A stretch of 64,000 nt of DNA, from NCBI GenBank assembly GCA_039096225.1, contig JBBPEB010000030.1, positions 682,001 to 746,000 of the forward strand, written 5' to 3'. The DNA is from Blastocystis sp. Blastoise. Lineage: Eukaryota > Protista > Bigyra: Opalinata. The position numbers were made by a program, and so were the translations under genes. Shown piece after piece: positions 20,001 through 63,604 of the stretch (the first letter of the stretch is position 1; the number at the start of each line of letters is the position of its first letter). The notes under the pieces are model-generated. The model was given only the letters and a program-made list of their open reading frames with translations. It was not told where the DNA came from and searched no databases.

Positions 20001-23000
20001 TCTTCTATTCCTGCTACTACATCTATAGACAACATCTCCACAATAAATACATTAACAAATATTAATTTGACAAGAAATACACTTCATAAAGGATCTACAA
20101 GTATTCACGGGAATACTTGCTATTTAGATGGTGTTCAAGATGATTCTGCTCTTTTTACATCACATGATCAACAAAATACTATTCCATCACATGGAAATAC
20201 TATTCCAGAACAGAATATATTATTGTATGGTGGTCGACAACGTAGTTATAGTAATAATGATGCCAATAAAGAGGATATATATAAAGATCAATATTCTCTT
20301 CCTAATCTATCTACATCTCCTTCTCGATCTACTAGTATATCATCAACTATGAATGCTCCCAGTTCATCTATTCATGCTACATCTAATTCTCTACATAAAA
20401 AGAATGATAATTCTTCTATTTCTATACAATCAAACCTCCCTTCTAAAGTATCTTCACCTACCTCTCCAAGGAATCCTGACTCTTCTCCTCCTCTTCCTCC
20501 TCCTCCTTCAAATGGATTATTAACATCCTCAATGCCCTTCTCAGAAAATAATACACTTCGATCCTCGATATTCGCGGGAATTGAGTTGAATGAAGAACAT
20601 AATTCTATATATGATGGTTTATATATTGTAGGATATCAACAATTGCCTAAAGTATATATATATATATATTATTAATATTTTCACTTTTTTTTATTTATAT
20701 ACTTTTTTTATATAATACGTTTATTATTATTTTTTAAATAATCAATTCCTTTTTCAAATTATATATATATATTATTATTATTATTTATTTCGCTTTATAT
20801 ATATATATATTCTTATTTCTCTCTAGACAACTATTTTAGATCATTATAAGATGGAACGACTCTATAAACTGGAAGTAGGTGGTTATTTTGACATCAAATC
20901 TCTTCTTCCTGATACTCTATATACATTCCAAGTATTTTATATGATCATTCGTTAAATAGAAGTGTTTTATATAATTATATAGACGTTATATATAATATAT
21001 ATTTTATTGTATTCTTTATAATATATATTTTTTTTGCTATATTATATATATATATTCTTTATTATTTTTATACAAAATATTCTTTCTAATGTATATTCTT
21101 TATTATATATATAATATATATATATATATTTTCTATATATAGATCCAGAAAGTATATCCTGAAGGTCGTTCTGCTCCCTATATATATCCAATTTCTATTA
21201 AAACACCTTCTCTTAAAATCATTGATTTCCCGTGGGGATCCAATAGTGCTGTTAAAAATGAAGATGTTATATATATAGATGTTTCATGTGTATATATAGG
21301 TATAAAGAAATTAAATAAGAAAACATCCAAGGCATGTCTTGCTATCTATCTAAAAAAGAGATTGTATATATATATATATATTTTGAATAATTATATTTTA
21401 TTTCATATACTATATTATTATATATATGTTTTTATTTATTTATTCTATATATAGACTCTATATATTATATAAAAAGAATAAGAAGCGTTTGATTTTAGAT
21501 TTAAGTCGATGTGTTCGTTGTGAATACGAAAAATATATTAATAAACAACAAGATACATTACTTATAACTGTATATATATATTTATATTATCTAATTATTA
21601 TTCTTCAAGTATTTTATTACTATTATTATATTTATAGTTCCAATATACTAATAATCAATACAGATATTTACTTATAAAACCATCTCAAAGTATGTATCTT
21701 GATTTGTTTTCATATTTGTCTATTAACTTGTATTTTGATTAAAATAATAATAATAATAATAATAATAATAATAATAATAATAATAATAATAATAATAATA
21801 ATAATAATAATAATAATAATAATAATAATAATAATAATAATAATAATAATAATAATAATAATAATAATAATAATAATAATAATAATAATAATAATAATAA
21901 TAATAATAATAATAATAATAATAATAATAATAATAATAATAATAATAATAATAATAATAATAATAATAATAATAATAATAATAATAATAATAATAATAAT
22001 AATAATAATAATAATAATAATAATAATAATAATAGTAATAATAATATATATATAGCTGCTTCTATTCAGTATATGTCAAAAATAATGTCACCATTACTTC
22101 CTGTTAATATATATGTATATATACATATAATAACTATAATAATTATAGTTTAATAATATAATTATATATATATATATATACACATATGCATGCTATAACT
22201 ACTTCTCTTCCTCTATCTCCTGAAGAAACTGCAGAAACTGAAGAAAATGCTGATACTTCTCCTTCTCCTATGCCTGATAATCTAGATATAGATCCTGATA
22301 ATCACGGGAATAATGGAATATTTGAAACGATAGATGCATTCTCTAAACAAGAGGAAGACTTGAAAGAAAATAAAACACAGTAATATATATATATATATAT
22401 ATATATATAATGAATTATTATATACAGTCATATGAATAATAAAGCAAGGTCACTATTATCAAAACTTGAAAAGAAATGGCATCAATTCTCGAAATAGTAT
22501 TTATATATAATTATAATGCTTATAAATATTTTTATATATAGTAAAAAGTTACAGATTATAGAGACTTGTTTAATTAGTTATTTATTATTATATTCTGTTA
22601 GTCATCCAAATCTGTTTTCTCTTCTTCTTCTTCTTCTTCTCTTCCTCTATGCTCTTCCTACACCTCTAAATATACCTATCAATTTTATACATATACTATC
22701 CTTTATTAGGTATTCTATATAATGTTTATTATTATATTTATTATTATGATTATTATAATATTATTCTATAGTTATATATATATAATTCTCAAATATATTA
22801 TTCAAAGTGATTTTATTAATCAAAATGTTTCTCCTGAAGGGCAATACTATTTTGAATTCTTTAGTAATAATACTGACACACCCTTCGTCACATCTTCCTT
22901 CCAATATGTTTTCCTTGTGGGTTTATATAAAACAGATAATGATATTATATCCACTATATATATATATATTATAGCTTATAATGTAATGATATTTATTTAT

Positions 23001-62297: not shown

Positions 62298-63604
62298 TTA
62301 TACTCGTCTTCCCATGATTAATTCTGCAGTAAGGAACATGATAGCGGCATTAGGGACAACACGGAGTACATGTGCATAACAACCAGCATATAGAGCTTTA
62401 AGACCTTCTTCTTTATATATAGTAACAAAACAATTCCAAAGACCTTTATATTTAAGTATATATATATATATATATATATATATATATATATATATATGTA
62501 TACGAGATGCACCATTTTGTCTTAATCTTGTTCTAACAACCTACATATATATATATAAATATATAAATATATATATATATACTTCATGTGGATATGTACA
62601 CAGTGTAGCGATTAACTTGGATAAAGCAGCATCCAAAAAACTTCTCCATTTTGGTGTTTCTTTTCCTTTTTGTTTGTATACGCTATCACTGTAAGACTTG
62701 ATATATTCATACATCGTAAATTGAATAGCAGTTTCAGATAGACCTAAATAGCTGGCATTTAATCCTTTGAAAAACCCTTTCATTCCCGCCTCTTTATAGA
62801 TTTCCCGGGTAATATCTTTAATACCACGATGATTCTCAGTGTATATATATTAAGGAGTATTTAAATAATGAATCAAAATTATTAATAAAATCATAATAAA
62901 CAAAATAACTTAAATAAATCAATAAAAAGGATATATATTGATTGAGTTGAATTCTAGTTTTGATAACCCAAATAGGACAAGTAGCAGTAACTGCAACAGA
63001 TCCCGCCAAAAGAGACGATATTAATGCACTTGAAATGTGATTCAATGCTGAATATTTCTTCAACATATCTTTACTATTCTCATAACTATATAATAATTAT
63101 TATTTTTATAATATATTTATTATATAATATTTAATATAATAATAAATGTAGTAATAATAATAATAAATACACATAGAAATGAATAGCTCTTGAAGGAGCG
63201 ACACTTATAGCCATTAACTAAACAAAAAATGAGTTACAAAAATTATGTTACAAATATAACATACAAATCCACCTCTCCAAAGACCATGAATTCCTTCAGT
63301 TTTTCCTATGTCATAAATACCACGAAATACACCTGAAAATCCTTTGTATTCCTCGAATATTCCACTCTATAGAGAATGATTGTTACTAATAAAAGATTTT
63401 AAATAATATATACTTGATACCTGGTTTTGATGACTTCTAACGGACATGTACATAATGCTCCTAAATACAACAAATAAACCTAATGCAGAATAATAAGTAA
63501 AATATACCAGTGATTCCACCCACCAAACCTGCAACAAAGCTATTAAACCCACTGCTTTGTGAATTCTTTACTTGTTGACTAAAAGGCGATCCTTTTGGTT
63601 GCAT
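62298..63604 (-). CDS. Mitochondrial carrier, pyrimidine-nucleotide carrier type (SLC25A33/36, Rim2-like)
   Basis: Three Px[DE]xx[KR]xR-type repeats: CPLEVIKTR, CPIWVIKTR, YPHEVVRTR. Also PSRAIHF, ASYLGLSE and RVVPNAAIMF. Confidence 0.9.
62841..62934 (-). other. U12-type AT-AC intron (mitochondrial carrier)
   Basis: Minus strand CAA TAT|ATATCCTTT...TCCTTAAT ATATATAC|ACT GAG; consensus donor and branch; phase 0; restores the frame. Confidence 0.92.

Follow-up and report, generated by a model that had tools for sequence, protein, structure and literature searches.

The analysed window, a 64,000-nt stretch of the genome of Blastocystis sp. Blastoise, a stramenopile from the tortoise gut (contig JBBPEB010000030.1, positions 682,001 to 746,000), contains five AT-AC introns, I1 to I5, in three host genes: a Piezo-type channel, a TPR protein tentatively resembling a TFIIIC subunit, and a mitochondrial carrier (Table 1). 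The Piezo-like gene has Pfam matches to Piezo_THU9_anchor and Piezo_cap, and its public model places 17 introns within 3.9 kb. In searches with single exons, the exon downstream of I4 matches TPR and the next exon matches GTF3C3/tau131 weakly; a PDB search with this gene gave nothing beyond such weak GTF3C3/tau131 matches, and the identification of the I4 host with this TFIIIC subunit is tentative. The exons flanking I5 match Pfam Mito_carr, upstream at positions 5-36 and downstream at positions 45-91.

Table 1. Features of the window discussed in the text (window coordinates; spacing is from branch box to terminal AC).
Feature	Positions	Strand	Length	Phase	Donor	Branch box	Spacing	Remarks
Piezo-type channel gene, C-terminal part	22186..26133	+						Holds I1-I3; KAK8792902.1 (P0001), 797 aa, maps exactly onto the window
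I1, AT-AC	22947..23031	+	85 nt	0	ATATCCAC	TTCTTTAAT	8 nt	
I2, AT-AC	23828..23906	+	79 nt	0	ATATCTAT	TTTCCTTCAT	8 nt	
Micro-exon	24085..24138	+	18 residues					Between a GT-AG intron (24018-24084) and I3
I3, AT-AC	24139..24216	+	78 nt	0	ATATCCTTTAT (consensus ATATCCTTT)	TTCTTAAT	9 nt	3′ end reads ATTCTTAAT, then the spacer to AC
I4, AT-AC	35414..35597	-	184 nt	0	ATATCTAT	TTTCCTTGAT	13 nt	
I5, AT-AC	62841..62934	-	94 nt	0	ATATCCTTTTT (consensus ATATCCTTT)	CTCCTTAAT	8 nt	

Splice signals of the five introns

The first-pass annotation described five introns that begin with ATATC[CT], carry a U12-type branch box, end in AC and leave their exons joined in frame, and direct reading and scripts reproduced each of these features. 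The terminal dinucleotides are AT-AC and the phase is 0 in every case, and the exons on both sides join open frames. Frame restoration alone is no evidence, however, because frame-keeping AT...AC pairs are very frequent by chance in sequence of 23% GC.

Measured against the donor consensus /[AG]TATCCTT, I3 and I5 match in full, I1 at six of eight bases, and I2 and I4 at five of eight with T in place of C6, so that two introns fit the consensus strictly and the other three loosely. The branch pattern T[CT][CT]TTNA[CT] is found in all five, ending 8-13 nt before the exon, with 8-13 bases from box to terminal AC and with no pyrimidine tract. I4 and I5 match TCCTTRAY exactly, the boxes of I1 and I3 each have one C-to-T change that amounts to a wobble against the GG of U12, and the box of I2 has C where R is expected. 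The boundary may be shifted by as much as 4 nt in I3 (an ATAT repeat) and by 1 nt in I5 (a shared A), in both cases leaving the mRNA unchanged.

We applied a filter that combined donor and branch box with their spacing, open flanks and an intron GC content not above 16%. Seven donors passed in the window versus one in the reversed sequence; five of the seven are the introns of Table 1 and two follow a stop codon. Applied to 200 kb sampled from another contig, the filter retained two donors, as it did in the reversed control. Of the additional candidates in the window, those at 41915 and 41923 were rejected as lying downstream of a stop codon, and that at 8769 because a GTTTAT...AG intron or coding sequence is the likelier reading there.

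Conventional splice sites were also sought at each intron. For I1 there is no GT/GC-AG pair that keeps the frame. At I2, I3 and I5 such pairs occur, but they either cost 13-113 residues or rely on poor GTT donors and alter a loop, in which about 8-9 hydrophobic residues are replaced or added. The near-length-neutral alternatives for I4 use GTT donors and lose a conserved TLG. The I4 splice product (...P-SFSGTY|QTLG...) retains the usual 10-residue Pro-to-Gly spacing between TPR repeats. The case for I4 consists of its motifs, the reading frame and this TPR register, the last predicted from the TPR consensus, and an alternative acceptor, CAG 3 nt further downstream, is possible.

Some of the introns, chiefly I2 and I4, could instead belong to a U2-type AT-AC class or to another class with odd ends that is not removed by the minor spliceosome. 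Their ATATCT donor departs from the U12 donor at +6 and belongs to a class that is not enriched genome-wide, and at the codon boundary occupied by I2 the paralogue of the Piezo-like gene carries a GT-AG intron of the U2 type. Because the ATATCT class lacks a genome-wide excess, the assignment of I2 and I4 to the U12 type rests on branch box and spacing. Against a non-U12 origin, however, both introns have strong branch boxes (TTTCCTTCAT and TTTCCTTGAT) at a U12-typical distance and lack a pyrimidine tract and AG, the C-to-T change in the donor still pairs with G in U11, and their boundaries are unique, neither intron being flanked by a direct repeat along which the ends could slide. We consider a non-U12 origin of these introns unlikely; very probably, all five stretches are true introns of the minor-spliceosome (U12) type.

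Minor-spliceosome components and genome-wide abundance

The search of the genome for minor snRNAs that the first-pass annotation suggested as a check recovered U11, U12 and U6atac together with a U4atac candidate. U11 (62.9 bits) and U6atac (63.8 bits) both exceed the Rfam cut-off; U12 scores 46.8 bits (Rfam cut-off 53), is full length and has an intact GUAAGGAAA branch-binding box. The U4atac candidate (29.7 bits) has a K-turn, an Sm site and 13-bp complementarity to U6atac, and pairing of its 5′ end with U6atac reaches -28.9 kcal/mol versus -14.1 +/- 2.5 kcal/mol for shuffled sequences (0 of 500 reach this value). The U6atac box facing donor positions +6 to +8 has GCCGAGA in place of AAGGAGA. 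The companion search for minor snRNP proteins identified a PDCD7/59K-like exon and 48K-type zinc fingers. With the minor snRNAs and two protein markers present in the genome, the earlier reading of the signals as U11/U12-type is borne out.

In the predicted route, the ATATCC(TTT) donor would be bound by U11 and the TTYCTTRAY branch box near the 3′ end by U12, with catalysis of intron removal falling to the U4atac/U6atac pair. ATATCT donors and TTCTT or TCTTT branch boxes would place a C-to-T change opposite G in U11 or U12, and G-U wobble pairing would be retained.

Genome-wide abundance was estimated from counts of strict motif patterns in the real sequence and in a reversed-sequence control. 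The pattern ATATCCTT...TYCTTRAY...AC occurs 90 times versus 18 in the control, an excess of about 72. The GT-AG analogue GTATCCTT...AG occurs 5 times versus 3, an excess of at most 2, and the AT-AC bias proposed in the first-pass annotation is thus upheld and is extreme. Further strict patterns gave 24 versus 2 and 42 versus 16. No measurable excess was found for the short-intron class of 36-72 nt (23 versus 21) and none for non-TT donors (34 versus 35 and 58 versus 66). The relaxed donors ATATCY, ATATCCTV and ATATCCVN showed no excess genome-wide, repeat families dominating both the real and the control counts. Across intron lengths of 36-131 nt the strict-donor excess totals about 100.

Together with the 200-kb sample, these counts point to roughly 200-500 U12 introns in the genome, or about 0.3-1% of all introns, whose number is estimated at 50,000-80,000. 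The numerator derives from strict motifs, from a reversed control inflated by repeat families and from scaling factors with wide error, with an upper bound near 1,500 (2-3%); the denominator is an estimate, the control of a crude U2-type census having been too high to yield a firm value. The window, with an estimated U12 density about ten times this genome average, is a local cluster.

These figures bear on the possibility that the whole genome is expanded to about 3% minor introns, the fraction extrapolated in the first-pass annotation, and that the window is typical. Five AT-AC introns in one window are in keeping with such an expansion. Variant donors (ATATCT and ATATCCAC) would escape strict patterns, and the diverged U6atac box could permit many degenerate donors. 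The controlled counts nevertheless yield an excess of only about 100 for strict donors and none for the three relaxed classes, and the 200-kb sample, whose intron density is no lower than that of the window, contains one clear U12-like intron. A genome-wide fraction of 3% was not confirmed, and we regard it as quite unlikely. The estimate lies close to 0.5%, the level below which the annotation considered its own proposal refuted; of the expanded, AT-AC-biased lineage that it envisaged, the bias stands, but the counts suggest a U12 fraction that is not well above 1%. It is highly likely that the window carries five ordinary U12-type AT-AC introns that form a local cluster in a genome with a few hundred minor introns.

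Public gene models and the age of the introns

The public protein KAK8792902.1 contains the join produced by removal of I1 (...KTDNDI|YTVPPF...), and both flanks of I1 align with the Piezo paralogue (P0005) near residues 2144/2148. I1 gains support from this model because the annotation pipeline favoured RNA-seq-supported junctions (PMC12129017).

At I2 and I3 the public model differs from the AT-AC reading. In the I2 region a 258-nt GT-AG intron with the junction 23699|23958 skips an exon and removes 42 residues, among them a conserved membrane helix. The exons flanking I2 project onto paralogue residues ending at 2279 and beginning at 2280, with the anchors SKM, four residues and YS. In the I3 region the public model splices from GT (24118) to AG (24247) in another frame. 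The micro-exon upstream of I3 fills precisely 18 positions (68-85) of Pfam PF24874 between the neighbouring exons and aligns over its full length to residues 2317-2334 of the paralogue, a score reached by 0 of 500 shuffles. Four other Piezo proteins show the same gap of 18 residues. In the paralogue gene, on contig 8, an AT-AC intron of 81 nt (ATATCCCTT...TTTCCTTAAT...AC) is annotated at boundary 2334|2335, the same as that of I3. The AT-AC versions of I2 and I3 are residue-exact with both the Pfam Piezo profile and the paralogue.

That the public GT-AG model is correct at I2 and I3, and that the AT-AC reading there is merely an artefact of the first-pass annotation, is highly improbable: KAK8792902.1 does use GT-AG there, and its pipeline favoured RNA-seq-supported junctions, but the model deletes the 42 residues with their helix, puts the micro-exon out of frame (11 residues versus 29 in the Pfam profile and five homologues) and conflicts with the paralogue's own public model, which places an AT-AC intron where I3 lies. 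The expectation that gene finders restricted to GT-AG would misannotate all of the host genes holds for two of the three Piezo introns, I2 and I3, but not for I1, which the public model uses correctly. Errors are possible in public gene models of this genome wherever a U12 intron sits.

Comparison of the Piezo-like gene with its paralogue shows one intron shared (I3), one site with a GT-AG intron (I2) and one intron absent (I1). At the sites compared, an intron is absent at the I1 position from both the paralogue and a metagenome relative. A candidate Piezo orthologue (P0009) was rejected, as the gene lacks introns and the metagenome contig that carries it is unrelated. A search for Piezo orthologues from other Blastocystis subtypes found none in the length range, and a search with exon queries for transcript-derived fragments found none.

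For I5, the orthologous site in a pig-gut metagenome (L033:1422-1479) has a 58-nt AT-AC intron at the same codon, with an identical 11-base donor, a TTTCTTGAT box and a diverged interior. A near-identical copy of I5 lies at G000:C5:24402-24496.

By these sequence comparisons, I3 predates the gene duplication, and I5 is also present in a distant relative from the pig gut. No fewer than two of the five introns are accordingly old. De novo gain, suggested in the first-pass annotation as a possible origin, does not fit these two and is at most possible for I1, which may be a true gain because it is absent from the paralogue and from the metagenome relative. It is conceivable, if doubtful, that minor-intron turnover is in progress in tortoise Blastocystis, with I1 perhaps gained de novo and transposon-like families perhaps spreading AT-AC introns. 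The paralogue and pig-gut comparisons provide comparative material of the kind that Larue and Roy requested on the question of whether the minor introns of Blastocystis were gained recently.

As a separate observation, AT-AC introns (ATATCCTTT...TTTCTTAAT...AC) appear to be present in multi-copy families that resemble transposons as well. If so, these families would offer a route for spreading such introns.

Relation to known minor-intron systems

Like the AT-AC U12 introns of animals and plants, the introns described here are associated with a ATATCCTT donor, recognition by U11 and U12 (inferred here) and a conserved U12 branch-binding box. A TCCTTRAY branch box near the 3′ end (10-15 nt there) and the absence of a pyrimidine tract are likewise common to both. 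In contrast, U12 introns of animals and plants are mostly GT-AG and avoid phase 0, whereas those of the window have AT-AC ends and lie in phase 0. A further difference is in the U6atac box pairing with donor positions +6 to +8 (GCCGAGA here, AAGGAGA there).

The minor introns of Physarum polycephalum number in the tens of thousands, have mostly non-AT-AC ends and show signs of recent creation. They represent an exceptional minor-intron expansion (PMC10639083). As in Physarum, minor introns are unusually numerous here for a protist lineage, and there are signs that some arose recently. Unlike in Physarum, a few hundred are estimated, which is not an expansion of that order. Neither a new kind of system nor a Physarum-like expansion is revealed.

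The closest comparison is with Blastocystis ST1, for which 346 U12 introns and all minor-spliceosome components were reported (Gentekaki et al. 2017, PMC5608401), and later 253 U12 introns, 77% of them AT-AC and 49% in phase 0 (Larue and Roy 2023, PMC10639083). The trait is already published for ST1 in these two studies, and the present genome is hence no new lineage discovery; the tortoise-isolate genome paper (PMC12129017) leaves U12 introns unmentioned. The two members of the genus share hundreds of mostly AT-AC minor introns, all four minor snRNAs (U4atac being a candidate here), the lack of a bias away from phase 0 (49% in ST1, five of five here) and fast turnover between relatives. They differ in intron length (78-184 nt here versus a median of 39 nt in ST1) and in the 23% GC of the present genome, where branch boxes are often the G-U wobble variant TTTCTTAAT. 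The AT-AC bias also looks even stronger here, the GT-AG analogue being nearly without excess. The AT-AC-rich minor-intron system of Blastocystis is thereby extended to the deeply diverging tortoise lineage, whose introns are long enough for their signals to be read clearly.

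Evidence for the five AT-AC introns

The five stretches, read directly from the window DNA, match their first-pass description as AT-AC introns in sequence motifs and in the open frames that they join, and all five are in phase 0. Frame restoration alone is no evidence for an intron, because frame-keeping AT...AC pairs are plentiful by chance at the 23% GC of the window. A combined filter was therefore used, asking for ATATC[CT] at the donor, a box of the form T[CT][CT]TTNA[CT] 8–14 nt before the AC, a frame open over at least 15 codons on each side and an intron GC of at most 16%. 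This filter discriminates: it passed 7 donors in the window, the five introns plus two that lie behind a stop codon, versus 1 in the reversed sequence. The original observation is confirmed. For I1, no in-frame GT/GC-AG alternative was found in the window, and the alternatives for I2–I5 either lose conserved residues or depend on GTT donors of poor quality. An extra candidate with a perfect ATATCCTTTTT at an exon edge has neither a proper branch box nor an AC; coding sequence running into a GTTTAT...AG intron is the likelier reading.

Coordinates of introns and other features discussed in the text
Feature	Location	Strand	Description
I1	window 22947-23031	+	85 nt; ATATCCAC...TTCTTTAAT, then 8 nt to terminal AC
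I2	window 23828-23906	+	79 nt; ATATCTAT...TTTCCTTCAT, then 8 nt to terminal AC
I3	window 24139-24216	+	78 nt; ATATCCTTTAT...TTCTTAAT, then 9 nt to terminal AC
I4	window 35414-35597	-	184 nt; ATATCTAT...TTTCCTTGAT, then 13 nt to terminal AC
I5	window 62841-62934	-	94 nt; ATATCCTTTTT...CTCCTTAAT, then 8 nt to terminal AC
Rejected candidate	window 8769-8870	+	
AAT/ATT repeat	window 21743-22050	+	perfect trinucleotide repeat, ~300 nt
I5 copy	G000:C5:24402-24496	-	near-identical to I5
Carrier orthologue intron	L033:1422-1479		pig-gut metagenome; 58-nt AT-AC intron
U12-like intron	G000:C3:515909 onward (L015:5909-5990)	+	perfect ATATCCTTTAT donor, TTCTTAAT box
U6atac gene	G000:C21:544821-544937 (L002:1501-1617)	-	
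U4atac candidate	contig 8, 151033-151167		
tRNA gene	L025:2078-2149	-	66.7 bits
Family copy	C13:1011307-1011383		
Family pair	C13:1254110-1254192 with C13:1258328-1258397		
Family pair	C14:1265540-1265607 with C14:1269854-1269937		
Family pair	C30:22717-22791 with C30:26978-27054		

I1–I3 lie in a Piezo-type channel gene. With exons used singly as queries, a conserved Piezo exon retrieved KAK8792902.1 (NCBI title: hypothetical protein, Blastocystis sp. Blastoise), whose 797 residues map 100% onto the window. This public model joins I1 exactly at 22946|23032 (...KTDNDI|YTVPPF...), and since the annotation pipeline gave preference to RNA-seq-supported junctions (PMC12129017), I1 has indirect transcript support. 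Around I3, residues 6-36 of exon 23907-24017 match positions 36-66 of the Pfam profile Piezo_THU9_anchor, and positions 86-181 are covered by exon 24217-24510, beginning at its residue 1. The 18 profile positions left between them, a gap likewise found in four other Piezo proteins, equal the 18 residues of micro-exon 24085-24138. The three exons project without gap or overlap onto residues 2280-2316, 2317-2334 and 2335-2432 of the Piezo paralogue KAK8805823.1 (P0005), and the end-to-end alignment of the micro-exon with this paralogue has a score reached by 0 of 500 shuffles. The exons flanking I2 project onto ...2279 and 2280... of the same protein, keeping as anchors SKM and, after four residues, YS.

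The public model places at I2 a 258-nt GT-AG intron (23700-23957), which leaves out exon 23755-23827 together with a portion of the following exon and drops 42 residues, a membrane helix among them. At I3 it uses GT(24118)-AG(24247), reading the micro-exon out of frame (11 residues). KAK8792902.1 mis-models the Piezo gene over window 23700-24250 (+), apparently by picking GT-AG substitutes over two AT-AC introns. The expectation that GT-AG-minded gene finders would misannotate these genes is borne out for I2 and I3, two of the three Piezo introns. The AAT/ATT repeat, with two open frames (poly-Asn or poly-Ile), lies a short way 5′ of the annotated start; the N-terminal part of Piezo may lie beyond it, so that the public model may be truncated.

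The exons flanking I5 match Mito_carr positions 5-36 and 45-91. A pig-gut metagenome orthologue of this carrier, with exons 58% and 51% identical, is interrupted at the same codon boundary by an AT-AC intron, which shares an identical 11-base donor, ATATCCTTTTT, and carries a TTTCTTGAT box in an otherwise unrelated interior. A kept donor and box with a diverged interior is the pattern expected for conserved splice signals. The I5 copy near the start of contig 5, where the carrier gene was presumably copied along with it, suggests a recent duplication.

Support is weakest for I4, whose splice product reads ...PSFSGTY|QTLGLIYE.... TPR repeats match downstream, and the next exon is a weak GTF3C3/tau131 match. 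Judged against the TPR consensus, the 10-residue Pro-to-Gly spacing across the junction would fit the repeat register; an AG acceptor three bases further on may be used instead. Overall, I1, I3 and I5 are well supported as U12-type introns; support is good for I2 and fair for I4.

Minor-spliceosome components

The search for minor snRNAs and proteins proposed alongside the original observation recovered U11 and U6atac, at 62.9 and 63.8 bits respectively. U12 was recovered over its full length at 46.8 bits, under the cut-off of 53, and its branch-binding box, UGAGUAAGGAAA, is intact. On the protein side, the genome has an exon resembling PDCD7/59K (25.3 bits) and three zinc fingers of the 48K type. 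A full-length U4atac candidate (29.7 bits) contains a K-turn motif and an Sm site, and through its 5′ end it pairs with the genome's own U6atac in a 13-bp helix of -28.9 kcal/mol (shuffled controls, -14.1 +/- 2.5; as low in 0/500). As a lead only, the paired bases differ on both strands from the human pair. A tRNA gene lies ~440 nt from this candidate.

With GG retained in U12 opposite the branch-box CC, and GGG in U11, G-U wobble would still allow C-to-T variants in donors and branch boxes to pair. The U6atac box reads GCCGAGA, the rest of the 5′ region being conserved; in human U6atac the box pairing with donor positions +6 to +8 is AAGGAGA. Such divergence could ease the selective constraint at donor positions +6 to +8, which would fit the ATATCCAC and ATATCTAT donors.

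Genome-wide frequency and intron turnover

Intron patterns were counted across the genome (33.34 Mb, 34 contigs), in which the window occupies bases 682001-746000 of contig 20, against a built-in control, the same pattern read backwards.

Genome-wide matches to intron patterns and to the backward-read control
Pattern	Matches	Control
ATATCCTT N40-70 TCCTTRAY N6-12 AC	24	2
ATATCCTT N40-70 TYCTTRAY N6-12 AC	90	18
AT-AC pattern with N71-101	42	16
AT-AC pattern with N10-40	23	21
AT-AC pattern, branch TYCTTNAY	149	79
Donor ATATCY with TCCTTRAY	107	107
Donor ATATCCTV	34	35
Donor ATATCCVN	58	66
GT-AG analogue GTATCCTT...TYCTTRAY...AG	5	3

It follows from these counts that the AT-AC bias is extreme, that the canonical ATATCCTT donor predominates, and that the total excess is ~100 for introns of 36-131 nt, roughly a quarter of it repeat copies. 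Once introns of greater length, variants of donor and branch box, and ends other than AC are allowed for, we estimate ~200-500 U12 introns in the genome. A 200-kb sample (contig 3, 400001-600000), with an intron density at least that of the window in a crude census, contained one clear U12-like intron without an AC at the expected spacing; the closest ends available are AT and AA, besides an AC located 18 nt past the box, and this is possibly a non-AC minor-intron end. The sample agrees with the estimate (Poisson upper bound near 1,500). For 50,000 introns (scaled controlled census) to 80,000 (the first-pass ~150 per 64 kb, scaled), the U12 fraction is an estimated ~0.3-1%. The controlled counts and the sample do not support a genome-wide expansion to 3%; the window holds about 10 times the genome average, mainly because three introns share one gene.

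The public model of P0005 (contig 8, near 1.958 Mb), mapped onto genomic DNA, has an annotated 81-nt AT-AC intron, ATATCCCTT...TTTCCTTAAT...AC, at the I3 site (2334|2335). An I3-type intron is thus used in a public gene model, and I3 predates the duplication. At the I2 site (2279|2280) the paralogue's intron is GT-AG, 72 nt long and of the same phase, a difference of intron type at this one site. No intron was found at the I1 site in the mapped model, nor at the I1 or I3 sites in a more distant Piezo relative (metagenome contigs, L030, 36% GC). Since I3 is older than the duplication and I5 is common to Blastoise and the pig-gut relative, the suggested de novo gain is possible for I1 only; taken together, the clustered introns are not the product of a recent burst.

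Sequences resembling AT-AC introns, ATATCCTTT...TTTCTTAAT...AC, form two families whose near-identical members recur at least 10 times on many contigs, often ~4.2 kb apart. The paired families look like two U12 introns on a multi-copy transposon, which, if so, could be a route for minor-intron multiplication.

Comparison with published Blastocystis

For Blastocystis ST1, the report of Gentekaki et al. (2017) lists 346 U12 introns, distributed over 319 genes, together with all four minor snRNAs and seven specific proteins (PMC5608401). Larue and Roy (2023) counted 253 U12 introns (77% AT-AC, 49% phase 0, median 39 nt) and described rapid loss between subtypes, offering recent gain as one explanation (PMC10639083). 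The genome paper on the Russian-tortoise isolate Rus-B (Lind et al. 2025; 33.3 Mb, 33 scaffolds, 23.1% GC, 8,547 genes) nowhere names U12 or minor splicing (PMC12129017). The Blastoise introns belong to this already known kind, resembling those of ST1 in type, AT-AC bias and phase-0 habit, but they are longer, with an AT-shifted branch box and a stronger AT-AC bias. New here are these differences, the tortoise lineage, the comparison between paralogues and the recognition that the public model is faulty.
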